From Octopus bimaculoides (lineage: Eukaryota): 52,103 nucleotides of DNA. This document shows, piece by piece, positions 6,945 to 40,014 of the stretch. Position 1 is the stretch's first letter, and each line of letters starts with the position of its first letter. Below the pieces are notes generated by a model. That model saw nothing but the letters and a program-made list of their open reading frames with translations. It did not search any database and was not told the DNA's origin. The DNA lies in assembly GCF_001194135.2 (NCBI RefSeq), contig NC_068984.1, forward strand, positions 52,435,615 through 52,487,717. The letters are read 5' to 3'. The translations under genes and the position numbers were made by a program.

Positions 6945-7237
6945 NNNNNNNNNNNNNNNNNNNNNNNNNNNNNNNNNNNNNNNNNNNNNNNNNNNNNNNN
7001 NNNNNNNNNNNNNNNNNNNNNNNNNNNNNNNNNNNNNNNNNNNNNNNNNNNNNNNNNNNNNNNNNNNNNNNNNNNNNNNNNNNNNNNNNNNNNNNNNNNN
7101 NNNNNNNNNNNNNNNNNNNNNNNNNNNNNNNNNNNNNNNNNNNNNNNNNNNNNNNNNNNNNNNNNNNNNNNNNNNNNNNNNNNNNNNNNNNNNNNNNNNN
7201 NNNNNNNNNNNNNNNNNNNNNNNNNNNNNNNNNNNNN

Positions 7238-15987: not shown

Positions 15988-16068
15988 ATGGCGTTTAATG
16001 TTCAAATACTGTGTCCAAATGGACGAAGACAAAATATTAAGACAAACTTCAACACCACTTTACTTCAG
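15988..16068 (+). CDS. ASPSCR1: TUG exon 1 ([27 protein letters not shown])
   Basis: ATG at 15988; resembles human SVLAPNGRRHTVKVTPSTVLLQ; donor CAG|gttgagt, phase 0. Confidence 0.9.
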
Positions 16069-19000
16069 GTTGAGTCATGTATTTGTATTATTATTTTGCG
16101 TCTGATTTTTTCTGTTCACATTTACTTCACTGGAATATAGCATAAGGCAGACGAGTTATTGTAATTATTTCGCCCTTTCAGCTTATTTATTGATAAATAT
16201 ATTTATTTATCTATATCTCTCTTTCATATATTATATATATAGGCGATCTTTCGTCTATATATATATACTGTTTTATGTTTTCGACGTCTTTCTTGTGATA
16301 CAGTTGTCACAACCATAACCTCAGCATGTTTTCATATTTGAAAATAATATATTATAAGAGAAGCAAGAATTGTATTATGAACCTCCACATGTTTTACTTC
16401 ATTGCTCTCAAAGCAAAATAACACTAACCGTTCCTTTTTAATATACACCTTCCTTCCGCCGAGGTTGACTTTGCCTTTCGGGGTCGATAAATTAGGTACT
16501 AGTTGCGTATTGGGGTCGATCTAATCGACTCCCCCTCGCCAAAAATTTCGGGCCTTGTGCCTAGAATAGAAAAGAATATACACCTTTTCTTCTATACATG
16601 AAAACTTGCTGATCTTTTGGTCATGATAAGAAAAAGAAAACGAAATATATTTTAACCGCTGAAGTTGAAATATAATATTTTCACTTATTAATTCCTTAAT
16701 ATTAGTTTCAGTGATAAAAACAAATAAATGACGTTTATGTAAGAAGTTGTCAGAAGTGTATTCTTCACGTAAAGCACAGACAATTTCAACAGTGATATTT
16801 AAACACGAGTATAGGCCAATCTTAATTTGAAATTGAATGTAAACAAACGGTTTGATTGAACTATTAGTTCTAAGTTTAATTAATTTATTAATGTGCGCGT
16901 ATTATACTTTTCAAGCACATTGTTCGTGTGGAATTTATATTCTTTGTCTAGGATTTGCTGAATCGAAACATCTGAAGTTCATAACGTGACAGGAGCGCTA
17001 CTTTGTAACTGTAATCAAAACGCAAGATTACACCGAGCACTAAGCAGTACGAAGGGTGAATTAGTTCTCTATACAAACCGAAGTGTAAAATTAACGAATA
17101 TTTCGTTATCTCGTAGTGCTGTGTTCAAATCCCTATATGCTTGGGAAAACGCTATATATTTTTGAATCACTATATGAAGCCCATGTCTAATACCCTAACT
17201 CTATTAGATCTAACTACCTTCACCACTATTGACGTAGTCATTCTTATTAGGTGATTGAACTAAATATTTTGTTATGTTGATATACTGGTATATCATTTCA
17301 CTTAATTGGCGCTCGTATACTTGAGCATTCATTTAAGAATCAAGGGCGGTAATCAAAAGCGCTAACAAAAAATTTAGAAATTTCTCGTCGGTTGAGCTTC
17401 GTATATATAAAATTAATTCAGTTGTTAACTAAGAAAAATTAAAAGAAAGTATTCGCACACATAATGTTAAATGACTGTTTACTGTTTTCCGAGAGCAGAT
17501 GAAATTTTAAAAGTCATAAATATTGAATCAGTTGTTTTTTTACGAAAAGATTTGAACCATAATAAAACCTATTTAAAAGATTGAGTTGTAAATATTCAAT
17601 TAATTGTAGTTGATCAATACCAATATTTGTAATTTGAAATAAGTTAATCGAAAACAATAAATAATAATTAATAGTTTCATTAATCAATAACCGATGTTTT
17701 ATTTAGATAAAGTTTTATTCAAAAGAAATTTCTCATCTCATTCCAGCAGTTTTGATTATTCTCACACCTTCATTATTCCAAATTCCCTTCGTAGTACTTA
17801 ACTATTTTAGTTTTAGACTTAATAGTATTTAGGCAAGTATGTGTATTCTATTATTTAATATTGTGACTATGGTGTTAAGTCGTATTTTCTGTGTTTTCTT
17901 TGTTATGGATCAATGTTTTAGCCTACTCTGAGATGTGTAATAAATGATTTAGTTTTGTGGAATATATCTAGTAGCAAGATATTCTTGCCATTCGTTTTTG
18001 CCATTGATAGATTATTCTTCAGAAACTGCTGACTGCTCTCTGCCAACAGTCAAACAGATCCATTGAACCACCACTCTATCTCTTGCTATCCATACTCTTG
18101 TTTTTTGTTGTCTGTAAAACATTAAATTTGATCCTTCAATCTGAGGACCATCATACTATGGAAATGCTTTATAACTTTAGAATAACTGAATAAATCTTGG
18201 AATTAGCTTTCATTGTTTTTATTCAAGAGGAATTCCAAGGATTATGGAAGCTCTTACTTCCTCAGATTAATGATTAAAGAGAAAAATCTAGATGAGAAAA
18301 TAATGTGAACAGACAAAGTGAATATGAATACAAAAAAAGAATTGGATCAACTCTTGTCTGACATTCAGAGATACAAGTGGAAATGATGGCTCTAAATGCC
18401 TTTGCAACCTTTAAGGATAGTGCTTAGCTTTAGATTCAGTGGAGATAAACAAATGAAATATAAAGGAAATGAACGTTTTAAAAAAAAACCTCGTCAAATT
18501 GACATCATTATATCATAATTTGCAAGTTTGAGCTCCTAAAAGTTATGAGTTTACAAATTATATTTGTAAACTTATAACTTTTTAGGAGCTCAAACTTGCA
18601 AGAGAAAGCCTTTGACAGGGTCCCCTAATCCCTTATCTGGTCATCAATGTGGAAACTAGGGATAGACAAGTGGTTGGCGAGAGCTGTACAAGCCATGTAC
18701 AGGGATGTTATCAGTAAAGTGAGTGTTGGCAACAAGTGCAATGAAGAATTCAGGGTACAAGTAGGGGTTCACCAACAATCAGTCTTCAGTCCCCTCTTGT
18801 TCATCATAGTCCTCCAGGCAATAACAGAAGAATTCAAGACAGGCTGCCCCTGGGAACTCCTCTATGCTGATGATGTTGTTTTAATAGCTGAGTCACTACC
18901 AGAACTAGAAAAGAAGTTTCAGGTGTGGAAGCAAGGTCTAGAATTGAAGGGCCTTCAAGTTAACCTAGCAAAACCCCAAGTCTTAGTAAGTAGGAAGGCG

Positions 19001-22000
19001 GACAAATCACAAATCCCTTCAGGTAGATGGCCTTGCTCGATCTGTAGAAAACGCATAGGTAGAAACTCCATAAGATGTACCCTGTGTAAGCTATGGACAC
19101 ACAAGAGTTGCAGCAATATCAAAGGAAGGTTAACTGGGAAGATAGTTTTTTGTGTGGAAGATGCACAAGTGCAATAAACACCGAAAGTGTACAGAAAACA
19201 AATTCCATCCCATGCCAAGGGGAAAAACTAGAAGTAGTTGATAGCTTCCATTGCCTAGGTGGCCATGTCAGGAGCAGGGTTGGTTCTCTGAGAGCATAGC
19301 TGCTAGAATAAGAATAGGCTGGGCAAAGTTCAGAGGGTTCCTACCTCTGCTGGTAACAGAGGGTCTAGAGTGAAAGGTAGATTGTATGATGTCTGTGTGC
19401 AAACAGCCATGCTACACAGCAGTGAAACATGGGTTGTGATTGCTGAGGATATGCATCGGCTTAAAAAAAAATGAAGCTAGTATGCTCCGCTGGATGTGTA
19501 ATGTCAGTGTGCATACACAACAGTGTAAGCATCCTGAGAGAAAAGTTAGACATAAGAAGCATCAGATGTGGTGTGCAAGAGAGACAACTGCACTGGCATT
19601 GTCATGTGATACATATAGATGAGGACAGCTGTGTGAAGAAGTGTCACACCCTAACAGTGGAGGGAACTTGTGGAAGAGGTAGACCCAGGTAGTGGAGCAC
19701 GACCTTCAAACGTTGGGCATCACAGAGGTAATGACAAGCAACTGAGACCTTTAGAGACATGCCATACTTGAGAAGACCCAGCAAGCCAAGTGAGATCGGC
19801 CAGTGCCAGTGTCGCATAACTGACCCATTTAAAAGCACCCTTCAATTGTCAGGTGATATGCTATGCTTGTGAAGACCTGTTGAACCAAGTGAAATCATAG
19901 TTCTGGCCAATGCCAGTGTCGCCTGACTGGCACCCATTCTAGTGGCACATAAAGAGCACCATTCGAGTGTAGCCGATGCTTGTACCACCTGACTGGCACA
20001 TTAAAAAGCACCATTCAAGTGTGGCTGATGCCAGTGCCGCCTGAGTGGCACGAAAAAGCACCCACTACACTTATAGTGGTTGGCATTAGGAAGGGCATCC
20101 AGCTGTAGAAACCTTGCCAAATCAGATTGGTGCCTGGTGCAGCCTTCCAGCTCTCAGTCAAGCCATCTAACCCATGCCAGCATGGAAAGCAGATGTTAAA
20201 TGATGATGATGATCTGATGTTATTATTTTTTTCTATTTAAAGATATTAGAAGACTGCTGTAAAAAACAAGGGTTTTTACCACCTGAAGATTATTCTCTCA
20301 TGTAAGTTCTTTACATTATAATCATGTCATTACCAATTTGTTAATGATAATATATTGTTAAACCAGTTTACTAAGAACCATTTTTTCAGCTATGTGACGC
20401 ACTTCTAAGATCTAAGTCACTGTTATTATCTACTTGAATTGTAGCAAGATCCTATCTAATTTATGATATGTCTCAGCCTATTTCTTTCCAAAAGATTGTA
20501 ATTCTCTTCTCTCATAACACATTGACACATTGACTTTAATGAAGTAATAATTATTGTTGTAGTTCATCACTACTAACACTTTTTCTTTGCTTTGTTAAGT
20601 CTCCAAGCTCATAGCACTTTTTCAATTCAGCATCTGCCAGCCTTTTAAATCAGTCCAGTCCATTGCTATTATCTATCCTTTTTTTTTTTCCACCAACGAA
20701 AGCATTAATACTAAGGTTAGTCATGAAGGAATCTCTATATAGGTGCTCTCCTTGATAGAAATAGCAGTCAAATCTTCCCCAAATCATGTCTTATCACCTT
20801 AAAAAGAGGAAAGAATACATTGGTTACTGTATTACAGAGTATATAGAACCTGATTCACAAAGAGATGATAAACTCCAGCTTCGATAGATAAATAGGTTAC
20901 ATGAAAAAATTTGTTTGTGATGTTGATCCCAGGGAAGCGAGGGCACTTGATAATGTGACACTCTGGCAATCTTATGTAATCCTACTGTGGGGTAAAGCTC
21001 TCATTCAACTGTAGGAAAAATGTAAATTCAATGAATTATTGTTCTAAACTTACATTTGAGAGATTGCAGCCATGATTTGGGTGTTCCAAGGAACTTCAGT
21101 ATTACATTAAGTTGATTGTGTATTATTCAAAAGAGAGAAATGGTTTTGGTGAAATTGCAGCACTCTTGTTTGAAAGTAAACAAAAATAAACAGGCATGGC
21201 TGTGTGATTAAGAAGTTGGCTTTGCAAGGCTTTGGGTTCAGTCCCACAGAATGGCACCTTGTGCAAGTGTCTTCTACTATAGACCCATGCCAACCAATGC
21301 CTTGTGAATAAATTTGATGGATGAAAACTGTGTGGAATCCTATTATATATGTGTATGGCTATCCCCATCGCTTCTTGACAACTGGTGTTGGTTTGTTTAC
21401 ATCCTCATAATTTAGCAGTTTGATAAAAGAGATTAATAGAATAAGTATCAGACTTTTAAAAAAAAAACAACTACTGAGGTGAAATTTGTTCAAGTAAAAT
21501 CCTTCAAGACAGTACAACAGTATGGCTGCTGTCCAGCAACTGACAAAAGTAAAAGATAAAAGATAAGCAATTTTCTATTTTAATGTCTTGATGTAACTGA
21601 GAAACTGAAACACAGTATTGCAGCAGTATTATCTGGTTTTACTCCTAGTTCATCACTTCCTATTCATGTATTAGACATGTCTCTACCAGGTTCTGTCCTG
21701 GTGCAAAATAAGCAACTAATTTGCTTCTGTTTACATTGGTTGTAAAAAAAAAATATTGAAAATAAATGGCCACTGTTGAATTAAAACCTTGTGAGTAAGC
21801 AAATCATTTGATAAGTTTGTTCAATTGGAGCTGGCTTGGAGCTGAACAACAACTACAGCCTCTTACCCAGTTACTTGAGTTCAATCTACTTCTCAAGTTT
21901 ACATTTACTTATCTAAATAACTTCTTACTCTGTTAATCCAACCTTTTTAGCCACATGACTTGCTTGAAATAGTTATCAAATTTCCCTCAAACAAAATTCT

Positions 22001-25000
22001 ACCATAATAAAAAAAAAAAGTGGGGGTATGTTTGATAGCATCCTCTATGTATTGTCTGCAAAAGAACTCAAATATAGCAAGTTAAATGATCACTTTCTTT
22101 ACCACTATATGCCTTACAGTATTTAGATGTAACCAATTCCTAATTGCTTCACATTTTCTATTAATCCAAATCTCACTGTGGGTGGCTTTTGTCCCTTATG
22201 CAAAAGTAGAAATAATAAAATCATCATCATCATCATCATCATTTAACATCTGCTTTCCATGCTGGCAAGGGTTGAACAGTTTGACTGAACATTTGTAAAC
22301 TGGGGAGCTGCACTAGGTTCCAGTCTGATTTGGCAAGGTCTCTACAGTTGGATGCCCTTCCTAACATCAACCTCTCCAAGTGTGTAGTGGATGCTTTTTA
22401 TGTGCCACTTTCATGATCCCAACATCAGCCACAACTACGATCTCACTTGGCTTGACAGGTCTATACAAGCATGGCATATCACCAAAGTATTTACTTACAT
22501 CTTTTCTTCTGATACAGTGGTATTGTGCCTAATTAGTATTTGTTTCAACAGGAACTAAAGAAACAAAACTGTCATAGAATTTTTTATTTGTTGATGTTGT
22601 TAAATCCCATAAAATAAGCTTTTATAGAACAAGTCTTTTATTTATATTTTTATACAAGTAGAATCACAATTAAGGATATTGCATGCATCTAATATCTCTT
22701 ATTAAAAGATTAGAGGTTACTCTTATGTCTTCATGATGTTATGGTTACAATGAGTTTTTTTTTTAAAGTTTTTTTCTTGTAAATTTTCAGGCATGGTCGA
22801 ACAATCCTTGATTTAACATTGTCCATTCGCTATTTAAATTTAACAAACAATGCTAAGCTAGAATTAGTGAAAGCAGCAACACCACGAAGAGAATCTGAGA
22901 TAGTAGTTGCCTTACAATTGTCTGATGGTACACGACTTCAGAAAAGTTTTCTGCCTCAAGTAACATTATGGGAAATATTAGAACACTGGCAGAAGGAAGC
23001 AGACAGGTGAGTACATCCAATTGTTATGAAACCTACCACTGACAATGATACGTTTGTTTGTTTGTCTTTCAGTTCTTTTGTTTTTTGCAAATATACCCTC
23101 TTATTTTGGTTGTATATAATACATACCCTCATTTAGCCACCTGCAATATTACAAAAGACTCAGACAAAGCAGAAGTGCTGCGAAGGTGCCAGCTCATTGT
23201 TTGGGACGAATGCACCATGGCACATAAAGGATCCCTTGAAGCACTGGACAGGACCCTGAAAGACTCTTACATGAGGGCCCAGCTTTTCGGTGACAACTTA
23301 TCGGGTGACTTCTCCAAGCAACTTCTCACCATTGGTGATGGGACAGCTCCCACTGATGCAGCTGGAGAGATGGCTGTCTCACACGTAGGCACACCTGTGG
23401 ACACTGTGGATGACCTTACGACTGCTGTTTTTCCTGATCTGCACATAAACTACCAAAACTTGAATTGGCTGTGCGAAAGAGCGATATTAGCTCCCAAAAA
23501 CATATTTATTGCGAAACTCAATGAAAACCTACTGCGAAACCTTCCTGGAAACCTTCACACTACATGTCTGTGGACATTTGTGGACCAAGAAGAGGCTGTT
23601 AATTTTCCCACAGAATTCCTCAATTCCTTGGAGCCCTCCAGACTACTGCCTCATCAACTGCACCTCAAAATTGGAGCTCCTATCATGTTGCTGAGTAACC
23701 TGGAGCTACCACGTCTGTGCAACGAAATGCAGTTAGTGGTAAAAAAATGTGCTGCCTCAGGTTATTGAAGCAACAATTCTTATGGGTTGCAACATCAGAG
23801 ACAATGTCTTTATACTTAGGATACCTCTTACTCCATCAGATAAACAATGTCCCTGTCTCTTGTGTGGACTTCAGTTCCCTCTTCAACTTTGCTTTCCCAT
23901 GTCCATCAACATGTCCCAAGGCCAAACACTAACAACAACAGGCCTCCATTTAGGCAAACCATGCTTCTTGCACAGCCAATTATACATTGGATGCAAAAAA
24001 ATCCTTTTTGTGTTCACCCCAAAAGCCAAAATGAAAAACGTTGTCTACTGTGAGGTGCTGTAGGCTGTCCAACATACCGCAGCTTCCCTGCCAAACAGGT
24101 TTGTGGTGAGTGAGTACTATTGTTGCCATTCTTTCAAAATTACCTGTTTTTCTTAAGTCTTCTTTTTATTTTGTCTGCTACAGCTTCTCAATCTCCTTGC
24201 AGATGGCTTGAGTTTTGGCATCACTGCACCCACGCTTTTCATGTGAACGAAAAGGGACGTTTACACCTGTGAATGGTTAACAATCTTTTTCGGGGTTATT
24301 GTGAGAATGATAACACAGCCCTTTTCAGGGTTATTGTGAGAATGATAACACGGCCCTTTTCAGGGCTACTTTACATTCACTTGTTGCACCTCCTGAGATG
24401 CTCTTGTGGCTTCTCCAGGGCTTTTCACCCTGTTGTTACTACTTTAGTTATGGTCTATGGGAAAAATCACTTCCTCAATGTCAATGTTTGCAACTTAATG
24501 CAAAAAATATTCAAAGAGATGTACAACAAAAAAGAATGATAGAACCTATTAAGACCATTGCCGAGTATTTAATACCCGAGCAACGCCGGGTACTCCTGCT
24601 AGTCAATGCTAGTTTTTCTGTGTTTATGTTGTAGACTTTTACTTATTTCTCATAAAACCTCTTGTTTTGTATTAAATAGTTGTCTGTCTAATTTAATAAT
24701 TCACAAAGTTCATTACAATCTACATGTTTTTCTGTGTTCATTTATTTCACCTACAGCTCTTTACAACCACTTTTAACAACAGAAGTTGATACAAGCAGCT
24801 CAACATGTGTGCACCCTATTTGTATATATATGAGAGAAGAGGTTAGTGAAGTTTTATTTCACTTAATAACAATGATAATAATAATATTTGTTTCTTTATT
24901 GGCCACAAGGGCCAAACACAAAAACAAACAGGGACAATACAAAACAAGGGACATGTAGGGTTTAACACAAAAATTGAGTAAACAATAAAATAACAATGAC

Positions 25001-28000
25001 AATCAACAAGAAAAATCTAACAACAAAAATCCCCAACATGGGGAGTTCCACCCAGGACCAACCAAGGCACCCCACACATCTTGGTCACCCCGACCACCAA
25101 GGCAGGCACTCTTCTTCCTCTCAACTGCTCCAGCCTACAAGTGAATGTTCAGAGTAGGCCCATTCACATGAGCCATTTTTGCCACATTCATCCTCACTTT
25201 CCTTTTTCAAGTGGAACTTGAAAAAGTTGATGAGGGGCTTGGCCAAAGAGGAAAGTGTTTGTCTTCAGTCCTTTCAGCCTTGTCCACAACACCACCTTTT
25301 TTACTTTAGTCAAATAATGTTACCCTCCAATGCACAAGTTCAAGCAAGGTTGATTATGGAAGACCAACAGTCACCCATGAATACCAGCCTCCCTCCTCTA
25401 TGTCACCAATGTTATCCAAGGGAAAAGCAAGGGTCAATACAGCTTGGCACCAGTGGCACTGCAACTCATTTCTACAACTGAGTGAACTAGAGCAATGTGA
25501 AATAAAGTGTCTTGCTCAAGAACACAACATGCAGCCAGGTCCAGGTATCAAACCCATCTCCTCATGATTGTGAACCCAACACTCTAACCACTGTACCATG
25601 CACCTTCATATATAAACAGATTGATAGATATAAATTAGAAAATTAATATTTTAATCAAAGACTAAGCACAGACATATTGCTAATAAAGTTTGCTTCACTG
25701 TCACATTGTTCCAAGTTTGATTCCACCATTTTTCAATTTGAACAAGTATCCTCTACCATAGCCTCGAGCCAACAAAGGCTTTCTCAGTATAATTTGATAA
25801 TCCATCAGCTATATATACATATGTATATTCACTGGAGATAGCACATATCCTATATAGTTTAGCTTATGACTTTCTTCAATACAGTTCTATATTTAAGAGA
25901 TGAAGAATTATGTACATTATTTACATTTGACGGATATTTGTCCTCATCTTGTTTGTTGTTAACACAATGTTTCAGCTGATATACCCTCCAGCCTTCATCA
26001 GGTGTCTTGGGGAAATTTTGAACCTGGGTTCTCATTCCTAGGGTATTTTTTGATGTTGCTATTGTTGTTGTCGTCATCACCATTGTCGTTGTCATTATTA
26101 TTATTATTATTATTATTATTTAGGCAGTGACCTGAATAGTAGTAATAATAATAGCATCAAAAAATAACTTAGGAATGAGAACCCAGGTTCGAAATTTCCC
26201 CAAGACACCTGATGAAGGCTGGAGGGTATATCAGCCAAAACATTGTGTTAACTACAAAGATGAGGACATATATCTGTCAAATGTAAATAATGGACTTCCT
26301 TCAAGATAAATAAAATAAATACTGGGGTTGATAAAATCAACTAAAATCTTAGATTTTGCTTCAATATGACCACAGTCCAATGACTAAAACTGGTAAAGGA
26401 ATAATAGAATATTATTTCTGAGATATTACAACACAATTGATTCAAACTCTTTCCTTTAAGAAATACATTTTAATGATTATAATTTGTATTTACATTTTTT
26501 TGCTGTTTAGATTATTGGAGAAATTGCTTTGAAAACCACACCCTTACGGAAATTAGGACTTACTGGCGGCAAAGCAGTTATACGGTAATTAAGTAGGATT
26601 TATATTTGAAGTTGTTAAAATTATTATGAATATTGATCTCAAATTTTGACACAAGGCCAACAATTTCAAGGCGAGATTAAGTTGATTGCATCAACCCCAG
26701 TACTCAACTGGTACTTATTTTATTGACCCCAAATGGATGAAATGCAAAGTCAACATCGGCAGAATTTGAACTCAGAACCTGAAGACAGGTGAAATGCTAT
26801 TTAGCATTCTGCCCAGCATTGCTAATGATCATGACAGCTTGCCACCTTAAAATTGTTATAAACATTGACATGAAATAACAGTAATACTTTTTATGACATA
26901 CTATACTTGCTTCAAATGTTATGTATTATAAAAACTCTACCATGCAAAACAAAGACACTGTGTGTGTGTGACCACCATTTGACAACTAGTGTTGGTTTGT
27001 TTACATCTTCATAACTAAGTGGTTTGGCAATAAGAGACTGATAGAATAAATACCAGATTTTAAATAAAAAACATGTACTTGGGTGCTCCAGTATGGCTGC
27101 AGTCTAACGATTGAAGCAAGTAAAAGATAAAAGATATTGTTGTATGTATGTTTGACAGAAAGAGAATTTTGTTGTTTGTCCCAACAAATTTGACTGATAG
27201 AACTATTATCTTATGAACCTTAAGGGGGTAACGATTTTATACTTTACTCTGCAATTAACCTTATTGTTTTTGTTTTTTTCTGTCTAGGCTAGTTCACAGA
27301 CAAGTTGATGATGTTACCTATGCTCAAATTATACAGAAGATTGATACTGAAACTGCCAAGAAGATGAAATTAGATCAGATAGCAGCCAGGCATTTAAGAG
27401 AAGAGAAAAATGAAAGAGAATTGCGAGCTGTTAGGGATGTTGGTGATAGTTCTTCTGATTATATGATGGAAGTATCTCAAGAGGCACCTAATCCTGTTTC
27501 AGCGACCCAACCAAATATGCAGATCTCAGGGCATCTTACTTCTCCACAGGATGTGGCACAGCGTGATCAACAGAGAGAATTTAAACAACAGCAGCAACAA
27601 AAAGTATGTATGTATCCACTTGCACATAGACATAGGCATGCAAGCAAGTTCAGAACCAGGGCCTAGATTCAATGGCAAGTTAAAAGCCTTTGGTTGGTGG
27701 TCTGTAGTCTGAGTCTGAACCTCATTGATCCAGTACATATTTCTAACAAAAGATATTAAAATGTTCCACCGTGAAACATGCAAGATAGTTTCAATCCATG
27801 ACCCGTGAACAGATAATCCAATATCTTATCTATTTGACTAGCCCTCTCTTACCAGCAAACATCTAACTGCCATTCTTCTCTCTATTACTGTCTTCTCTAT
27901 CACCCTCTCATCCCATTCACTGTTTGTCTCAACATATTTTCTCTTCATTCACCCTCTCACTCTGGTTCTTCTGTTTTGCTCTCTCTCTCATTTATCATCT

Positions 28001-31000
28001 TGATCACATTGAATAAAGATAACATATAGTAATGAGAACTCTTCAACCTTGCTGGATACAAAGTGGCCTTACTACTATAAGTGTTACAATAAAATGCCTC
28101 CAGTATATTCTGTTGAGTGGTTGTTGCTAGGAAGAGTATCTTGCCATTGAAACTGTACCAAAAATAGAAAGTACAAGTGACGCATAGTCCTTGACCCATT
28201 TGGAGACATGTAATTCTGAATAAAAACTCACTCAGACCATTATGACCCATCCTTCTCATACCAGCATAAAAAACATGTAATGTGACATTATGTTATGTAA
28301 TGGCTGTGATGTTAAAAGTGATGGTCTGTAAGTCAAATAGGTCATTATTTCAAAGCTAACTTTTTTAGAAAGTGTGCTATGTCCCTGTGCAAAATATACA
28401 CTTTTTACTTGAATAAAAAACAAAATAGTGAAGGGAACCAAGAATGATTCCTTCTGAATATAGCAAGATGCCGTATCTGTTTCTTAGTTTCTTTCATAAC
28501 ATCTCTTTGCAGCAGTTGTCAAGTATGCTAAACAAGCCCTTGTTTAAATATCTGAGCTGAGTTATTGTTAAGATTATAATAGTTCAAACTATGAACTTCA
28601 TTTTTAGACATGAGAAACAGGCACTGAATAGGAGGAAGAGCTTTGGCAATTACAAAGGAGCAAATTGTTAGATTTGTAATGTTAAATAACATTTGAGTAA
28701 GGTTGAGGACAAGTGAATTGAGATAATGATAAACATCTACTGAATTTCTTTAAATACAGGGTGAGTCAAAAGTATTGCCCAATTCCTGCTTCCCAACTAG
28801 GAGATGCTTTTGACTCCGAACACTTGTTCTGCAAGTTGAGATATTAATGAGTATTAACATGATGCATGATCCAGATTCAGTAACTTTTAAAACTCAGTAA
28901 TAACCTGCAAAACAACTAAGGCATGACTTCCCAGAAACTCTGCGCTACTTTTGACTCTGTATAAAAGCCAGACAATTGTGCTGGTATTTGCATAGCATGT
29001 TTCTTGGTGGATGTAGAAAAAACCTGCAGAACACAGACAAGAGAAATAGTGGAGAATATGTAGTAAGGTCAGAACATTAGGCCTCACAGATGATGCACAG
29101 TATAAAATTGAAATGCATGGAAGAGTGCTATGTTGAAGACCTTTCCTAATTGTTAAAATTACCACTGTAGCAGCAATATCAAAGATGACTAGTTTGTTTT
29201 AATTAAAGGAATTATCTTTTCTATAAAACTACTAAATTCCATTTTTACCCCCTTTTTTTCATATTTTTCTCTTTGTTTTTAATTATTACAATATTGTGTC
29301 TTCCAGCACCAAGAAAGAAATTTTGCCAATGAGAGGTTAGTGTGGGTTTTATACTAACTTTTATATATAAGGAATTTTTTATAAATGCATATTTGCAAAT
29401 ATTACTAGGCTGTAAAATTAGAGGTGCTATACTACTAATAGTTTATAATTTCTTTTGCAATAAAACATGCTCTGAACTAAATGATGTAATTAAGAATTCT
29501 AGCTTCTTGACTCAAACTTTTCTGATACTTTCACATTATGTTTATGCCTCAAATCTACCTAACATGTAACTTAAGAATGATAAGAATTTTATTATAAACT
29601 TTAGCATTTTGATATACTATACTCAAGAAGACATGTCCACCAGAACAGAATCGAGATCCTAAAATCAAAATGCCATGTAAAAAGCATTGGTGTGGGTGAG
29701 TGCTGGTGCCACGTAAAAAGCACCCTATACACTCTGTAAAGTGGTTGGTGTTATTAAGGGCATCCAACTGTAGAAACCAAACCAAAACAGACTATGGCAT
29801 TTGGTGTGGCTTGTCAATTCCTGTCAAGTCATCCAACCCATGCCACTAAGGAAAATGGTCTTTAGATGATGATGAGGATATTGTCTGCATATGTTTCACA
29901 GAAAGAAATTTTTGTTATTTAAGATTAATTATTTTATGTTCTAATCTACAACTGACTTCACTGTATTTCCTGTGTAGGCTAGTTCATGGAGAAACTGAAG
30001 GTACTACTGATGCTGTACAGGAGACCAACAGAGAAACTGTCAAAAAGATAAAAATGGAAGCGATAGCAGACACACATTTAAGAAAAGGAAAAACTGAAAA
30101 GGAAATGGAAACTGTTAGGGATGTTGGTGATAGTTCTTCTGATTGTAGGATGGAAATATCTCAAGAGGAACATAGTTCTGTTTCAGAGACTCAACGAAAT
30201 GTGCAATTCTCAGGGCATGAAGAAAATCTTATTTCTTCACAGGAAATGATGTGGCATGATCAACAGAGAACATCTACACTTCAACAACAACAACAGCAAG
30301 AAGTAATTATGAAACTTTGATTTTTTTTATTATTTTTATCTATACATGATGGCACCTGTGCCCAGTGTCGCCTTCCTGGCACGTGTAAAGACATTCGAGC
30401 GAGATCGTTGCCAGTGCCGCTGGACTGGCTCCTGTGCAGGTGGCATGTAAAATACACCATTTTGAGAGTGGCCGTTGCCAGTACCGCCTGACTGGCCTTC
30501 ATGCCGGTGGCACATAAATGCACCCACTACACTCTCGGAGTGGTTGGCGTTAGGAAGGGCATCCAGCTGTAGAAACTCTGCCAAATCAGATTGGAGCCTG
30601 GTGTAGCCATCTGGTTCACCAGTCCTCAGTCAAATCGTCCAACCCATGCCAGTATGGAAAGCAGACGTTAAACGATGATGATGTACTGGCACATATTCTC
30701 ATATCAAACAAAATACACAACCAGCTTTGAACACAAACAACCAAAATTAGCTCATAATTGACATCAAAATCAGAGTCCAGGTTGAATGGCAACTAAAACC
30801 ATGTAACTGGTGGTTTATAGTCTACGTGTGAACTCCATTGATCTAGTATATATTCTTGATAGGAAATGATAAAATATTTTACCCAGAAAAACACAAATGA
30901 CTTGCAGTAAGTTTGAATTCTATCTCTAGGAATTAATATTTATGTCTGTAGTAGATGTAAATATGTAAGAAATGTTTCTTCCCAAATAGTCTGAACTGTT

Positions 31001-31844
31001 ATAATCTTAACTCACCTCAGCTTCTACACAGAGATGTTGCTGTAATTATGAGAGCAGAACTACACATATTGTATTTCCTTTTGTGCTACCAGTTATCCCT
31101 CTCCCTGGAACCATTTCTTCCAGACTTCCAGACAAATATATTAGTAATTAGTATTGCATGTGTCTGAGAGCAAATGAAAACAGTGGATGTTGAAAAACTG
31201 CAGTACACCAACAAGAACAATATTGAAGAATATGTAGTAAGGTCAGAATGTTAGGCCTCACTGATGATAAATGATATTAAATTAAAATACATGGAAGGGC
31301 CTGTGTTGAAGACCTTTCCAAATCAAACCTGCATTTAAATGTGGATGTTAAATTTACCACTGTAACAATAATGGTAAAAAAGATGATTTTCTTTCAGCAA
31401 AGAGGATAATTTTGGTTGCAGGAATTAACTTTTTTCTAAAATAAACTACTATCTTGTAACTAATAGTTTTTCTTTTTCCCAATTTTAATACTATTTTCTT
31501 TTATTTTTAATTATTTCAATAATGTGTCTTCTTTCAGTTGCAAGACAGAACTTATTCTCAAGAGAGGTAAGTGTAGATTTGATACTAACTTTGTTTGTTT
31601 ACTTTCATCGTAAGTTGAATTTAACGTTAGCGTCTTATGAAGCTATATTTATAAGTTCTAAAATTGCAGAAGAATTTGTTACTGGACAGTTTAGCTTAAT
31701 GGTATAGCACTTAATGCGTAATCACGGGGATGTGAGTTCGAGTCTCATGGCTGGCCGGTAACGTATTTTTCTGCAATATAAGGAGCAAGTAATTTGGTTG
31801 ATTAGACAACTGAATCCTCATCATTCAACTGGTGGGGAACCCTC

Positions 31845-31878
<34 letters not shown>

Positions 31879-34800
31879 GTAAAGTGCCAGTCACTTAAAG
31901 TAGGAGGAAGTTGTGGAAGAGGGAGACCCAGAAAGATGGGACAAAGTATTGATGGCTTATCTCAAAATGCTGAACCTTATGAAGATGACAGAGGGCCATG
32001 ATATGCAGTACATTGCTGTACTAAAGAAGACCCACCCACCATAACAGAATTGATATCCTAAAACCAAGCTACCACAAAAAAAAAGCAGTAATGTGGATGC
32101 TGGTACCATGTAAAAAGTGCTGGTACTACATCTTAAGCACTGGTGATGGTACTCTGTAAAAAGCACCCAGTACACTCTGTAAAGTTGTTGGTGTTACTAA
32201 GGGCATCCAGCTGTAGAAACCAAGCCAAAATAGACTGGAACTTGGTGTAGTCCCTGGCTTTGCCAGTTCCTGTCAAGCCATCCAATCCATGCCAGCACAT
32301 GAAACAGATGTTAAATGATGATGATATATAATTATCATTTAACATCTGCCTTCCATGCTGACATGGGTTGGAAGGTTCAATCGGACCCAAATCACCAGAG
32401 GACTGTATCAAGGTTTATGTCTATTTTGATAGTTTCTATGGCTAGATGACCTTCTTTAACACCAACCACTTTTTTTGTTTTCATAGCACTAGTGAAGTAA
32501 CTTGCAAAACAAAAAGCTTCTTTTACTGAGTGGGGATGGGTGGGTAGTAGAGAAGGAGTGGCTTTATGCCAAGTGGTAAGAGGCTAAAATATAATGGAGG
32601 GACAGAAACAGGTGTCTTGTATGTATGTGATCATAGACAATCCACTCTGCAATGTTCTTACTATTTACTACTATGACGTCTTTCTCTTTATTTCCTAATT
32701 CAAATATATTTCTATTTCTTAGCAATAATTTTCCATCAAGAGAGGTCTTTTGGACCTCTTGATAGAAAATTATTATATAGGTTAACGTCTTAGCCCTGCT
32801 GGGTTCAGTGGTTACAGCGTCGGGCTCACAATCATGAGGTAGTGAGTTTGATTCCCAAACCAGTTGTGTGTTGTGTTCTTGTTTAAGACGCTTTTTTTCA
32901 TGTAACTCCAATTCTCTCAGTTGTTGAAATGAGTTGTGACATCACTAATGTCAAGCTGTATTGGCCTTTGGATATCATCCTTTAGATGACATTGGTGGTG
33001 TGGAGAGGGGAGGCTGGTATGCATGGGTGACTGCTGGTCTTCCATAAAAAAGCCTTGCCTGGACTTGTGCCTCAGAGGGTAACTTTCTAGGTGCAATCCC
33101 ATGGTCATTCACAAACAAAGTGGGGTCTTTACCTTTTTACTGATAGCAATATAAAAAATTAAGAGGAACATGAGACAAGATATTTAGATCTTTTCTAAGA
33201 AATCATACTGTAGGTGTATCATTAATTATGAAATGAAGTGTTTTGCTCAAGAACACAACGCGTTGCCTGGTCCAGGGATTGAAACCACAATGTTATGATC
33301 ATGAGTCCAACACCCTAACCACTAAGTCATGCGCTTCCACAAAAACAGTAAGTGGTTCCAAGACATGAAAAAGCATTTTAAAAATTTATTAGCTTAGATT
33401 TATTTTAATAAATGGTTTGTACATATTTTCATATGTATTTTATTTCATATTATACTTCTGTATTGGCTTTTAGGTATTTTTTTTTTGATCAGCATAAGGC
33501 TGCAGTAAATGACATATGCCTAAAGTGTTGCATAGTGGGATTGAACCTGAAACCACGTAGTTGGAAAGCTGGCTTCTTAACTACGCAGCCATGCTTTTTA
33601 TATTATTATCATATTGGGTCTTTATGTCTCTATTACATGTTTAATTTGGGTTCTGAATTCTCTGGGCACTTGCATTGACTATCTTCAGTAACATTTTCTG
33701 GTTGGTTTCATGCTCATTTTATTTTGAATCTAAATTTCCAAATAAACTGCTCTCCATCCCTTTTCGTTTTTTACTTCCTTCCACTTTATGGTGATAAATT
33801 TGGTAGGATCAGTGACAACAAGGTCATGTAATTCAAATCTTTTTAAAATATTTTTTCAAAATTTTTTTTTATCATTAACTAGCAGTATAACCCGACGTTG
33901 TCCGGGTGTGACTTATTACGCCATCTACGATAAGTCTTGCTAGGTGAAAATCAACTAAAAAAGAAAGCCTTACAACGAAAAAACCCTTATGATGTAAATA
34001 TGTTCATAATTCAAAAGACGATGAAATTAATAGGGAAAGTCTGAAGGCTGTTTTGTGTAACATTATTAAGTGTACGTAAATTTCATCCGTCTAATTGGCT
34101 ATACAAATGCTTGTGCAAAACAACTTTTTGCGCTGCCTTGATTATACATAGCAGGGTAATTCCTTTTCGCAGGAGGTAGGACGGCAATTTCTGATGAAGC
34201 AATTGCTGGCGATCTGTTGCNNNNNNNNNNNNNNNNNNNNNNNNNNNNNNNNNNNNNNNNNNNNNNNNNNNNNNNNNNNNNNNNNNNNNNNNNNNNNNNN
34301 NNNNNNNNNNNNNNNNNNNNNNNNNNNNNNNNNNNNNNNNNNNNNNNNNNNNNNNNNNNNNNNNNNNNNNNNNNNNNNNNNNNNNNNNNNNNNNNNNNNN
34401 NNNNNNNNNNNNNNNNNNNNNNNNNNNNNNNNNNNNNNNNNNNNNNNNNNNNNNNNNNNNNNNNNNNNNNNNNNNNNNNNNNNNNNNNNNNNNNNNNNNN
34501 NNNNNNNNNNNNNNNNNNNNNNNNNNNNNNNNNNNNNNNNNNNNNNNNNNNNNNNNNNNNNNNNNNNNNNNNNNNNNNNNNNNNNNNNNNNNNNNNNNNN
34601 NNNNNNNNNNNNNNNNNNNNNNNNNNNNNNNNNNNNNNNNNNNNNNNNNNNNNNNNNNNNNNNNNNNNNNNNNNNNNNNNNNNNNNNNNNNNNNNNNNNN
34701 NNNNNNNNNNNNNNNNNNNNNNNNNNNNNNNNNNNNNNNNNNNNNNNNNNNNNNNNNNNNNNNNNNNNNNNNNNNNNNNNNNNNNNNNNNNNNNNNNNNN

Positions 34801-36937
34801 NNNNNNNNNNNNNNNNNNNNNNNNNNNNNNNNNNNNNNNNNNNNNNNNNNNNNNNNNNNNNNNNNNNNNNNNNNNNNNNNNNNNNNNNNNNNNNNNNNNN
34901 NNNNNNNNNNNNNNNNNNNNNNNNNNNNNNNNNNNNNNNNNNNNNNNNNNNNNNNNNNNNNNNNNNNNNNNNNNNNNNNNNNNNNNNNNNNNNNNNNNNN
35001 NNNNNNNNNNNNNNNNNNNNNNNNNNNNNNNNNNNNNNNNNNNNNNNNNNNNNNNNNNNNNNNNNNNNNNNNNNNNNNNNNNNNNNAGGGGTCAATATAA
35101 TCGACTATTCTCCACCTGCCCGAAGCAGCCGTTGTGGGAAAAATTTAAAATAATAATAATAATAAATAAATAATAATAAAAATGACCTCTGCCGATCAAA
35201 CTCCCAACCCACAACTAAGTCTTAAGTGTGTATATATATATGGGCAACACACACACTAAATAAAAAAGATGTTAGTAAGTAAAAGTGTTTTAAAAAAGAT
35301 TGTTAAATTTTCAGATTAACACCCGTACGATTTTCACTACAGTGTTAGGGTTAGGTAGGTAATGATGTGGGTGTTAATCTCAAGATTTACGAAAAGATTT
35401 TCCAAAAAAAACTCAGTTTGTAAGGAATAAATGTTTGTTGATCGTATTTGAGAAAGATGTCTCGATGGTGAAGGACAGTGTTAGAAATGGAAAGTAAACT
35501 TACAATTCCCGCCAATTAGAATGAGGTCATTGGTAACCATAGGTACATATATATGTGTGTGTATTTACGTATGATTGGTAGTGTGTCTGTTTATTTGACT
35601 CTCACTCTCCTTCGTTTCTCTGTCTTTTTTCTTGGATTGTTCGTAAACGTTCATAAGAGAAAGTAGCAATTGAAACGATGTGTAAGAGGAATAGAAATAG
35701 TTAATTTACACAGGGGTCAATATAATCGACTATTCTCCACCTGCCCGAAGCAGCCATTGTGGGAAAAATTTTAAATAATAATAATAATAAATAAATAATG
35801 ATAATAATGACCTCTGCCGATCAAACTCCCAACCCACAACTAAGTCTTAAGTGTATATATATATGGGCAACACACACACTAAATAAAAAAGATGTTAGTA
35901 AGTAAAAGTGTTTTAAAAAAGATTGTTAAATTTTCAGATTAACACCCGTACGATTTTCACTACAGTGTTAGGGTTAGGGTTTGTTAGGGTTAGGTAGGTA
36001 ATGATGCGGGTGTTAATCTCAAGATTTATGAAAAGATTTTGACAAAAACTCACAGTTTGTTGGGAATAAATGTTTGTTGATCGTACTTGAGAAAGATGTC
36101 TTGATGGTGAAGGACGGAATTAGAAATGGAAAGTAAACTTACAATTCCCGCCAATTAGAATGAGGTCATTGGTAACCATAGGTACATATATATGTGTGTA
36201 TTTACGTATGATTGGTAGTGTGTCTGTTTATTTGACTCTCACTCTCCTTCGTTTCTCTGTCTTTTTTCTTGGATCGTTCGTAAACGTTCATAAGAGAAAG
36301 TAGTAATTGAAACGATATGTAAGAGGAATAGAAATAGTTAATTTTAGAGGGGCAAAGTAATTTTGTATGTAGTTTTAGTATCTGTCATTAGAGTATCGAA
36401 ATGTGATTGTTTCAGTTTTGATCTTTTTGTATTTGTTGTTGGATTGATCGTAAATGTTCATAAGAGAAAGTAGGAGTTGAAAGGATTTGTATTAGAAAGA
36501 GGAAATTAGATTTTATTAGGGAGAAAATGTTTACTGCTGTAGTTTTATGGATTTTATTCATTATTAGGAAATTTTTGGAGTGAAAAAATGACGCAGTGAC
36601 CTAACAAATTGTATTTAGAATATTAATTGCGATTGTTCAATCGAAGAAATTTGGAATTGTGTAAATGTATGAATTTTAAACATACACACACACAGAGAAA
36701 ATTTGCCCTTTATAGTATAGATAAATCACAATAATGCTTGTTTGTGTTTAGCTATAAATAAGTTTCTTGAAAGATTATCATGCCAAAAAATGACTGCTCC
36801 AATTCATATGCAAATATCCAAAATTTACAAAAGCTTTTTCACTCATGTTGACATAAGTATTTTTAACTTACTCAATATTTTTATTCTACAATTTTTTTTT
36901 TGTTTTTAGTGATAAAGAAAGTGATGATTTTGAGGTA

Positions 36938-36972
<35 letters not shown>

Positions 36973-39944
36973 CTCTTTATTGAAATAACTTTGCTACTGT
37001 TTAGTTTATTTATTCTATTTAAAAGGTTTTCTTTTTATGATGTTATTTCTTTTCTGAGCACTAAAACTTGTTCAACTCCAACAACTGAGAGTTTTCAAAG
37101 AGCACCCTGAGTAAGAGAGTGTATTGCTTAATTTGTTTGCAATTCAATATTCTTAGGGCTATGGTTACTGTGAAAATTTGTTTTTTAAAATAAGATTTGA
37201 TGATTTGGAGTTGCCAAGTAAAAGTGCCTGTGCGATGTCACCTAAAAGTGCCCGTGCAACAACATATAATAGCACCTGTGTGGTAACATGTAAAAGCACG
37301 TGTGCAGCAACACACGTAGAAATGCCCATGTGGTGATACGTAAAGTGTCCATGCAGTGCCATGTAAAAGTATCCATGCAGTGACTTGTAAAAGCATCCGT
37401 GCGGGGACATGTAAAATTGCCCGTGTGGGGACATGTAAAACTGCCCATGTGGCGACATGTAAAACCGCCCGTGCAGCGACATGTAAAGCCATCAGAACTA
37501 CTGTCACACATGCTATCAGTGCCAGCCTTAGAACCACTCTTAAAAACTATATTTTAAGTTTAATAATTATACAAACAGATGAAAGACAGTGTTGTTGGTG
37601 TAGGGATTGCCATTTATGTTGCCAACCTCTTCATGGTATGGTGAGACAGTCTTTTGAAGCAGTGCCTAGCAACTAGTAACATCCACTTAGCTATGTACTC
37701 TCGATACGTCAACGACATTAACCTTGTCGTGAAAAGAAATACACATATGAACAATATACTGAATGAAGAACAGATAATTACAATTATACAACACATAGTT
37801 GACTAAAGGTTACTGTAGACTACCCCTCTAAACACCCCAGAAATAGATTATCTGTCCTAGAGCTGTGGATAGAAAATACTATGTTCAACAGAACTGTTAA
37901 ACTCTGTTTACTCCATTCACACTATTATAAGCCTATGGTTAAGCCACTGGTAATCTGTAGTGACTCAACAGTGTCAGGTACTACCAAAATGAACATCCTT
38001 ATGGCAGACTTAGAGCAATGAAGAACATATCCCCACTATGCCAACCACAAGAACGACAACACATCCAGCAACATTCCAGTTACACACAGTATGATAGAAT
38101 CAGAGTGTACAAAGGAGTGGAAACAAGATTTGAATACATTTTAAGAGATGATGAAAGCGGTATATGCCCACTATACCACAACAAGTTCTGGAATAGGTTG
38201 GAGAGAGACACCAACAAAAGAAATAAAAATAGTACTTGGTATGATAAGAATTTTCACAGTGTACTGTTTATTGATGCTACACCTATGAACAAGTTAAGTA
38301 GGACATTTAAGAAAATTTTACGCACAACTGGCCTTAAGATCAAAGTTGTAGAAAAGACAGGTAGGACTATCAAATCTATATTAAGTAAGTCATACCCATT
38401 TGATAGAATCATGTGTCAAAATAATTGTGTAGTATGTTCTACAAACCCACATATGAACTGCAAAACGAATAACACTGTATACCAGATTAAGTGCCAGGAA
38501 GGGACTTGCACGGTTCTCTTGAAGTCCTATATTGGTGAGACATCTAGAAGCATCAATGACAGGTTCAAAGAACACATGGACAACTACATTGAGAAAAAAA
38601 CCAAACTCCATCTTTTATCAACATACTGTAGACTGCCACAATGGCTCCTTAGGGAGACTTAGGTTAGACATCCTATCTACACATACCACTGATGCAATGC
38701 TGAGACAAGTCACCGAAGCTGTCTGTATACAGGAATACAAATCCACCCTCAACCGTTATTCCAAATGGGGTAACACTCTGATTCCACCTGGGAGTACCCA
38801 TTCATAATCACCTCTTTCTCTCATTTACATGTAGAAATCCATATATACATATTGAGAGGTATGATACTGAAATATATTTATGTAATTATATTTAGTCGTA
38901 TGAATGTACATAGATTAATATGTATGTACGTATGTGTATTTTAGCGTGTGCGTATTTGTATGTGTATGAGTGTGTATATGCATGTACGTATGGGTATGTA
39001 TGTATGCACATATATGCATATTCTGTAAGATTATATGTATATATGTGTTTATATGATTGTGTGTGCTTGTACATATGTATAAGTAGGTTTATATTTGCAT
39101 GTATGTATCTAAGACATTGTATCCATTCACCGTTAGATGGTGGTGAAAGGAACATATATATGTACAACCTTCAACAGAGTTGTATAGGATCTCTTCAGTT
39201 TCGCTCACAGATTGAAACATTTTTTTTTTTTTTAACTAAACAGTTTGATACTTTGTATACTGGTGTAATTTCTTATGCTGAACATAGTTTACTTTCAACA
39301 TTTTTGACAAAATTTGATATTTTAGAAGTTATTTCTTATTAAAGTTGTCATATTTGGGTAATTTTAAGCAATCAATGACACGTATTCAGCTGAAGAAAGC
39401 TACTGCTGTATGCAATAGTAATCAAAGAGCAACAACTTCCAGATCATCTCTACTAAATGTCACCACTCTGTTCTATTTTATTTTTGTTTACTGCCTGTGT
39501 TGCATATTATATGGTTTGTTTGTTTTTTTTTGTTTTTTTTTATCGCCTCTGTACAAGTGGTGACAATGCAAATGTACAAAGAGGTGACCAAAAAGTGAAA
39601 AAGAGGAAAGCGTGTAATATGCAACACAAGCAGTAAACAAAAATAAAATAGAACAGAGTGGGGACATTTCGTAGAGATGACGCACACATGCATAAATACA
39701 TATATACATACATATGTACATACATACATATATGCTTATATGCATGCATACACATGTACACATGCATACATACATGCACACATACATAAAAACATATATA
39801 TCATGAACTAACTGTTACTTTCTTAGATGCAGCATGAAGTTTTGTTAGTAAATAGGTCATGGTTTCAGAACGACAAAAATATTAAATGAAACTAACGATT
39901 TTTGTGTGTTCTTAAATGGCTTACAAACATCTTCTATACTGCAA

Positions 39945-40014
<70 letters not shown>

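Follow-up and report, generated by a model that had tools for sequence, protein, structure and literature searches.

The question raised by this locus is whether Octopus bimaculoides encodes a TUG (ASPSCR1) protein in which the linker between the ubiquitin-like (UBL) and UBX domains has been doubled by duplication of exons and, if so, how the additional copy is used and what has kept it open. The gene lies in a 52,103-nucleotide (nt) stretch of contig NC_068984.1 (assembly GCF_001194135.2, positions 52,435,615 to 52,487,717 of the forward strand), here called the window, and coordinates without another label are positions within it. The original prediction, made from the letters of this stretch, was that exon 6 and the micro-exon 7 occur twice together with their flanking introns and that both copies remain capable of coding. 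We find that this two-exon cassette is truly duplicated in tandem, by an event of an ordinary kind. The explanation that we favor, to which we assign a probability of roughly 0.7, is that the exon pair was duplicated within the Octopus lineage and would be used in series, the first copy (cassette a) being conserved and the second (cassette b) being kept in frame as a spacer.

The exon pair is present twice at the coordinates in Table 1, as predicted, without stop codons and with all eight splice sites of the GT-AG type: each of the four exons is preceded by a pyrimidine tract and AG and followed by GT. In the frame that continues from exon 5 (...GGKAVIR, ending in CG at the junction), the two cassettes contribute 115 and 118 codons, 233 uninterrupted by a stop, and in its other two frames each exon 6 contains 5 to 12 stops. 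The copies share the motifs that had been listed for them and a poly-Q end, and the estimate by eye that their proteins are about half identical was close (58/112, 52%). At the DNA level, ungapped identity between copies is 77.5% in exon 6 and 66% in exon 7, and the exon-6 copies are separated by three indels of 6, 9 and 6 nt. The upstream intron flanks are also homologous (27133-27287 against 29877-29977, 73% identical), as are the stretches of intron just before each exon 7 (29007-29306 against 31183-31537, 77% identical), and some 30 nt past each exon 7 can be aligned as well. Because homology reaches into the introns, the resemblance reflects a segmental tandem duplication and not chance similarity, and an internal repeat of ~115 residues created by exon-pair duplication, as originally proposed, is what the locus contains. 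The duplicated unit is ~2.7 kb long and repeated head to tail, with a left boundary at 27133/29877, where similarity sets in (GATATTGT...), and a junction between the units at 29876/29877. Adjacent homologous exons on the same strand and in the same phase, with an open frame and homologous flanks, are the features by which tandem exon duplication is recognized. A tblastn search found exactly two cassette copies in the window and likewise in the gap-free locus of Octopus sinensis; as regards a third copy within the assembly gap between micro-exon 7b and exon 8, tblastn found none in the gap-free O. sinensis or Argonauta loci.

Table 1. Positions of the TUG/ASPSCR1 exons, the duplicated units and other features in the window
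Feature	Position	Strand	Remarks
Exons 1-4	15988-16068, 20243-20301, 22791-23006, 24757-24841		upstream exons of the model
Exon 5	26511-26584	+	end of second UBL domain (UBL2), including LTGG motif; 100% identical to O. sinensis
Duplication unit A	27133-29876	+	upstream intron flank, 6a, intron, 7a, downstream intron closing in SINE-like element; collinear blastn/MAFFT matches to unit B
Exon 6a	27288-27603	+	316 nt, phase 2; slower-evolving copy
Micro-exon 7a	29307-29335	+	29 nt; 1 mismatch to O. sinensis
Duplication unit B	29877-32324	+	right end approximate; closes in SINE-like element 32016-32324, which matches 29617-29875
Exon 6b	29978-30302	+	325 nt, phase 2; faster-evolving copy
SINE-like insertion	30349-30680	+	intron 6b-7b; 335-nt gap in alignment to O. 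sinensis locus L005
Micro-exon 7b	31538-31566	+	29 nt; 3 mismatches to O. sinensis
Assembly gaps (runs of N)	6945-7237, 34221-35086, 49324-49463		middle gap in intron 7b-exon 8
Exon 8	36910-36934	+	25 nt, SDKESDDFE; directly after 7b; matches XP_014774029.1
Exon 9	40089-40155	+	67 nt; matches Argonauta VPDRNRVIFNRSE and annotated Octopus proteins
Exon 10	41165-41237	+	end of linker and start of UBX extension
Remaining exons	44288-44436, 45897-45959, 47399-47451, 49612-49663		downstream exons of the model
SINE, short interspersed element.

Pfam domains, orthologue matches and a structure model agree with the earlier assignment of the gene to TUG and of the cassette to the linker after UBL2. ASPSCR1 orthologues are the best matches, and the protein (P0240) contains TUG-UBL1 (PF11470; residues 9-72, E = 6.7e-22, 77.8 bits against a cut-off of 23.3) and UBX (PF00789; residues 485-559, E = 2.5e-13, 50.5 bits against a cut-off of 21). 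The segment that closes the second UBL domain is encoded across exons 5 and 6a and is conserved in the 27 orthologues in which this anchor was found; it corresponds to the mammalian cleavage site. The strand that follows the LTGG motif has its final residues encoded by the start of the cassette, which then extends into the central linker. Two segments of the window, ~500 nt each, were compared with O. bimaculoides GCA_001194135.2, chromosome CM046604.1, and are identical to it. Our exon model equals XP_014774029.1 residue for residue over the modeled span, and exon 9 restores the frame between exon 8 and the exon encoding PDEFFE, removing an apparent phase conflict. Both copies are already in the RefSeq and ENA protein models, and the feature is not new to databases; genome annotation is unaffected. 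No paper on this duplication was found in the literature, and none linking ASPSCR1 to cephalopods. In exact look-ups, the genomic open reading frames (ORFs) around exons 6a and 6b gave no match, and the full proteins matched genome records only and no transcript contigs.

The annotated isoforms place the two cassettes in one transcript. We compared 11 distinct isoforms, four from O. bimaculoides (X1, X2, X3 and an older X3), five from O. sinensis (X1-X5) and two from a separate annotation of Octopus vulgaris, and all 11 carry 6a-7a-6b-7b in tandem, differing only at their N and C termini. Serial inclusion in the order 5-6a-7a-6b-7b-8 is supported at the level of annotation. Among the annotated isoforms (P0115, P0235 and P0241 compared), first exons are alternative, with MEHSQLEYQSNTEIYYYKMDIK... 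standing in for the start of UBL1 (upstream of 20243), so some isoforms would be without the first UBL1 strand. The O. sinensis and O. vulgaris models have alternative C-terminal exons as well.

The repeat had been proposed to be lineage specific and datable by tblastn across mollusc genomes, and both expectations were borne out. In O. sinensis (L005) and O. vulgaris (L008), both copies occupy orthologous, syntenic positions in a region 91.5-93% identical to the window. The TUG protein of Argonauta hians (GAB1599081.1) has one exon-6-like segment, with VQEKFCYHE as the equivalent of micro-exon 7a, and tblastn of both cassettes against its gap-free 42-kb locus returned that copy only. Every other mollusc orthologue and Logan transcript read has a single copy, and 23 non-octopod linkers are consistent with a single copy in both length and motifs. 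With one copy in Argonauta and both copies in three Octopus species, the duplication is dated after the Octopus-Argonauta split and before O. bimaculoides separated from O. sinensis and O. vulgaris. A four-way comparison of both copies in O. bimaculoides and O. sinensis gave 67 sites fixed between paralogues and none shared within species, which yields the tree ((a,a),(b,b)). When exon 6a, exon 6b and an orthologous ORF were used in an exhaustive profile search, two real matches only were returned, an octopod genomic ORF and the A. hians TUG; P0111 (fibronectin type III repeats) and P0112 (a bacterial repeat protein) were discarded as false profile matches that sum many weak repeat matches. 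Four Logan genomic contigs (L001-L004; SRR11869384, SRR11869390, SRR11869391 and SRR11869394) hold an octopod orthologue of exon 6a, 91% identical in the exon and 85-88% in the introns; its splice sites are conserved, and a single 3-nt indel falls within the poly-Q run. These contigs are short and span only the 6a part. In L001, whose introns diverge by ~13-15%, the exon-6 copy groups with 6a (57 b-unique sites against 15 and 9).

Two further mechanisms were considered and set aside. Gene conversion as the source of a 33-nt block identical between the copies is rejected: no sites are shared within species, the block is conserved in the orthologues, and cassette b of O. sinensis keeps it through synonymous changes. 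Unequal crossing-over between SINEs is not supported, the element ending at 27132 being of another family than the one ending at 29876.

The two copies evolve asymmetrically, cassette a more slowly than introns and cassette b at their rate. Between O. bimaculoides and O. sinensis, introns differ at 215 of 3,872 positions (5.55%) and exon 5 at none of 74. Cassette a differs at 9 of 342, about half the intron rate and significantly slower (P = 0.008), whereas cassette b differs at 23 of 354 and is not distinguishable from introns (Fisher P = 0.018 for a against b); identity to O. sinensis is accordingly 97.4% for exon 6a, 93.8% for exon 6b and 94.4% for introns. Cassette a has 7 lineage-specific singletons and cassette b has 20 (P = 0.019), and with Argonauta as outgroup 14 unique residue changes fall in 6b against 5 in 6a. 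The N-terminal 40 residues of 6a can still be aligned with the mollusc segment RLVHRPV(D/E)DS...KIE.EK..K..KL, where 6b has diverged (GETEGTTDA...). Differences between the paralogues are spread evenly over the three codon positions (29/28/24). The comparison of nonsynonymous and synonymous rates (dN/dS) that had been suggested as a check gave wide intervals: between b orthologues the ratio is 0.44 (0.18-1.21), between paralogues it is 0.96 (0.54-1.88), and between a orthologues it is undefined in practice, with one synonymous and eight replacement changes.

Cassette b has nevertheless stayed open. Simulated neutral change leaves it without a stop with a probability of ~0.10 after 40 substitutions and 0.04 after 60, and ~51 substitutions are expected on the b lineage from the divergence of the paralogous introns. 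Intron indel densities predict three to five frameshifting indels in the cassette, with a probability of 0.005-0.04 of none; 24-33% of indels in introns are multiples of three, against all of those in the exons. All eight splice nucleotides would remain intact under neutrality with a probability of ~0.32, which gives a rough joint neutral probability for an open frame, no frameshift and intact splice sites of ~1e-4 to 1e-3. Between O. bimaculoides and O. sinensis, exon 6b differs by two 6-nt indels, has no stops and retains its splice sites. A 6-nt deletion that turns DHEIV into DAV is specific to the O. bimaculoides copy, and in O. sinensis the SSS codons of the conserved block in b carry two synonymous changes and no replacements. 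Retention under frame selection, as originally claimed, is therefore supported statistically, although b shows no slowdown relative to introns and constraint on its residues appears weak.

These figures bear on whether cassette b is an exon pair at all or a decaying one, untranslated in vivo, that gene predictors pick up for no other reason than its chance open frame and splice-like flanks. Such decay would agree with the intron-like rate of 6b and 7b, with a paralogue dN/dS of ~1 and differences spread evenly over codon positions, with the predicted disorder of the whole cassette at low confidence, and with the status of b as a predicted exon pair. We nonetheless consider it very improbable, given the low joint neutral probability, the fact that O. 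bimaculoides, O. sinensis and O. vulgaris have each independently kept the ORF and its splice sites across the two 6-nt indels, the conserved block maintained through synonymous changes and the dN/dS between b orthologues. Still less credence, next to none, is due to an artefact in which diverged haplotypes, or a collapsed or expanded repeat, were set in tandem during assembly. There are gaps in the window, one of them in the intron after 7b, but the copies are ~23-27% apart, far above heterozygosity, and differ in transposable element (TE) content, and the same two-copy arrangement in the gap-free O. sinensis locus and in O. vulgaris means that the artefact is refuted by three independent assemblies; the original prediction had judged mis-assembled haplotypes unlikely on similar grounds.

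More weight attaches to the possibility that both cassettes are functional but that one of them, most likely b, is often skipped, or that a and b are chosen alternatively, so that octopus TUG would have linker isoforms rather than a constitutively doubled linker. The cassettes are 345 nt (a) and 354 nt (b) long, each a multiple of three, so the frame is preserved with either, both or neither included, be it in the order 5-6a-7a-8, 5-6b-7b-8 or in tandem, and frame alone is no argument against alternative skipping. Symmetric cassettes of this kind are typical of skippable exons. The donor of 6b (GAA/GTAATT), without G at -1 and +5, is the weakest in the gene, and the first 10 nt of 6b (G CTA GTT CA, R-LVH) would complete the KAVIRLVH strand if joined to exon 5. 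The neutral rate of cassette b is one frequently seen in exons of minor isoforms. Tandem exon duplication is, moreover, a known source of mutually exclusive exons (PMC9013439, PMC9741552). Set against this, both cassettes are retained in every one of the 11 isoforms annotated in the three species, so that, at the level of annotation, the rule of one cluster member per mature mRNA does not hold here. Nor was a mechanism of mutual exclusion found among frameshift with nonsense-mediated decay, steric hindrance and U2/U12 incompatibility: joint inclusion leaves the frame intact, the 642-nt intron between 7a and 6b imposes no steric block, and all sites are U2-type GT-AG. A scan for inverted repeats yielded no convincing docking and selector pairs, only short, chance-level matches of 17-22 nt at 73-88% identity in introns rich in AT and TEs. 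On balance we regard alternative use of the cassettes as unlikely. Several of the points above nonetheless count against serial use of a selected cassette b: tandem inclusion is read from predicted gene models and so has annotation-level support, the 6b donor is weak and the cassettes are symmetric, the joint neutral probability is a rough figure obtained by multiplying terms that were estimated separately, both dN/dS intervals are wide, and the intron-like rate of b, with no constraint at the level of substitutions, weakens the case.

Compared with tandem exon duplications described elsewhere (PMC9013439, PMC9741552), the octopus case is alike in its adjacent homologous exons of the same phase, intact splice sites, intron homology and restriction to one lineage. 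It differs in that the unit is an exon pair (316/325 nt plus a 29-nt micro-exon) and not a single exon, and in that its copies stand in series according to the annotation and lie in a disordered linker, not in a folded domain.

The structure of the encoded segment was modeled with AlphaFold2 for isoform X2 (P0115), using 30 orthologues. KAVIRLVHRQV is modeled as the last strand of UBL2 (residues 162-173, predicted local distance difference test [pLDDT] ~90), and the first half of cassette a as a long helix (residues 175-219, pLDDT 84-92). Over residues 223-405, which take in the tail of a, the whole of b and exon 8, pLDDT stays below 50, although the alignment is shallow for b and low confidence there is partly expected. 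Neither exon-6 peptide matches any Pfam family, which together with the low pLDDT is in keeping with a disordered linker. Vertebrate TUG (ASPSCR1, UBXD9) likewise has UBL1, UBL2 with an LTGG motif, a central disordered linker, a UBX extension and UBX, and the segment duplicated in octopus lies at the start of the region equivalent to its intrinsically disordered region 1 (IDR1) (PMC12218103). In mouse, IDR1 (residues 183-321) is both required and sufficient to bring TUG to the endoplasmic reticulum-Golgi intermediate compartment (PMC12218103). Unlike this domain layout, the octopus linker sequence has no detectable similarity to the vertebrate disordered region beyond its first few residues, and any role in cephalopods is by analogy.

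The reading that we prefer, serial use of a conserved cassette a and a frame-kept cassette b, may be set out as follows. A segment of ~2.7 kb containing exon 6 and micro-exon 7 was duplicated head to tail in the Octopus lineage. Because the cassettes share the same phase and are multiples of three in length, we propose that they are spliced in series as 5-6a-7a-6b-7b-8, which would lengthen the protein by ~118 residues immediately after UBL2, where the central disordered region begins. Copy a probably retains the ancestral role: it completes the UBL2 strand and supplies a long helix, which is conserved across molluscs, and a tail rich in acidic residues, Ser and Gln. Copy b, without the helix signature, drifts at the neutral substitution rate while selection probably keeps it open, in frame and spliceable. 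Being kept in frame yet drifting neutrally, it may act mainly as extra disordered spacer, with a second copy of the conserved acidic-serine block; its contribution could lie either in spacing or in the number of such motifs.

A comparison of linker lengths, measured from IRLVH to PDEFFE, extends this reading to a second octopod. Twenty-three other TUG linkers are 205-294 residues long (median 247). The Octopus linker has 262-265 residues, or 144-147 without cassette b, and the Argonauta linker has 224, or ~120 without a tandem repeat in its exon 6. That coding repeat (L006 8290-8600) consists of 11.7 copies of a 27-nt unit with 92% matches, each unit encoding NVTQMEQQQ. Located at the Gln-rich 3' end of the single exon 6, it expands the linker independently at the site where Octopus has its duplication. 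The two expansions are alike in gene and site and in making the linker ~100 residues longer, and differ in that the Argonauta one is young, of the replication-slippage type, with nine-residue units inside one exon, and involved no duplication of exons with their introns. The motifs IPGV..ARRLA and FKFPEETKG, which other molluscs retain, are absent from the three Octopus TUGs and from Argonauta, as judged from the proteins and from tblastn of the loci (window 31567-41165, L005 and L006); the FKFP motif is present in 23/23 other measured linkers, amphioxus included. Two independent expansions at the same spot return the linker to the range of the others, which suggests, as a hypothesis drawn from two lineages only, selection on the length of the tether. 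Somewhat speculatively, the common ancestor of Octopus and Argonauta may have lost the central motifs, leaving ~120-145 residues, after which each lineage regained length independently; we think such compensation possible but would sooner doubt it than rely on it. If it is true, the target of selection is how long the tether from UBL to UBX physically is, not its sequence, and this would explain how cassette b can be constrained in frame yet neutral in rate.

Other features accompany the gene. The SINE-like element in the intron between 6b and 7b is absent from the orthologous O. sinensis intron, which makes it an insertion of the O. bimaculoides lineage, and related copies lie at 29617-29875 and 32016-32324. 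A TACTAAC box occurs 17 nt downstream of each micro-exon 7 donor (29352-29358 and 31583-31589), within an intronic block of ~29 nt in which the copies agree better than they do in exon 7; TACTAAC is the branch-point consensus. Transposon-derived ORF fragments on the forward strand of introns 1 and 3 (18629-19174 and 23049-23765) match a reverse transcriptase in the first case (RVT_1, E = 1.8e-10) and, in the second, a PIF1-like helicase of the Helitron type (E = 1.7e-11). In the intron before exon 9, a 214-residue ORF (38018-38662) contains, by eye, a GIY-YIG-like nuclease stretch of the Penelope type, with no Pfam match at E <= 0.001. A large tandem repeat with a period of ~625-640 nt and copies 91-100% identical occupies 35087-36547, and a 24-nt tandem array (AAAGTGCC.GTGC....ACATGTA) lies at 37221-37485 in the intron after exon 8. 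Neither Rfam matches nor tRNAs were found in 26000-37500.

Octopus TUG is thus a natural variant in which the start of the disordered region has been doubled and long retained, with one copy conserved and the other apparently constrained in frame alone. It offers a usable case for asking whether tether length or motif copy number is selected in this protein, with the Argonauta expansion as a built-in comparison.

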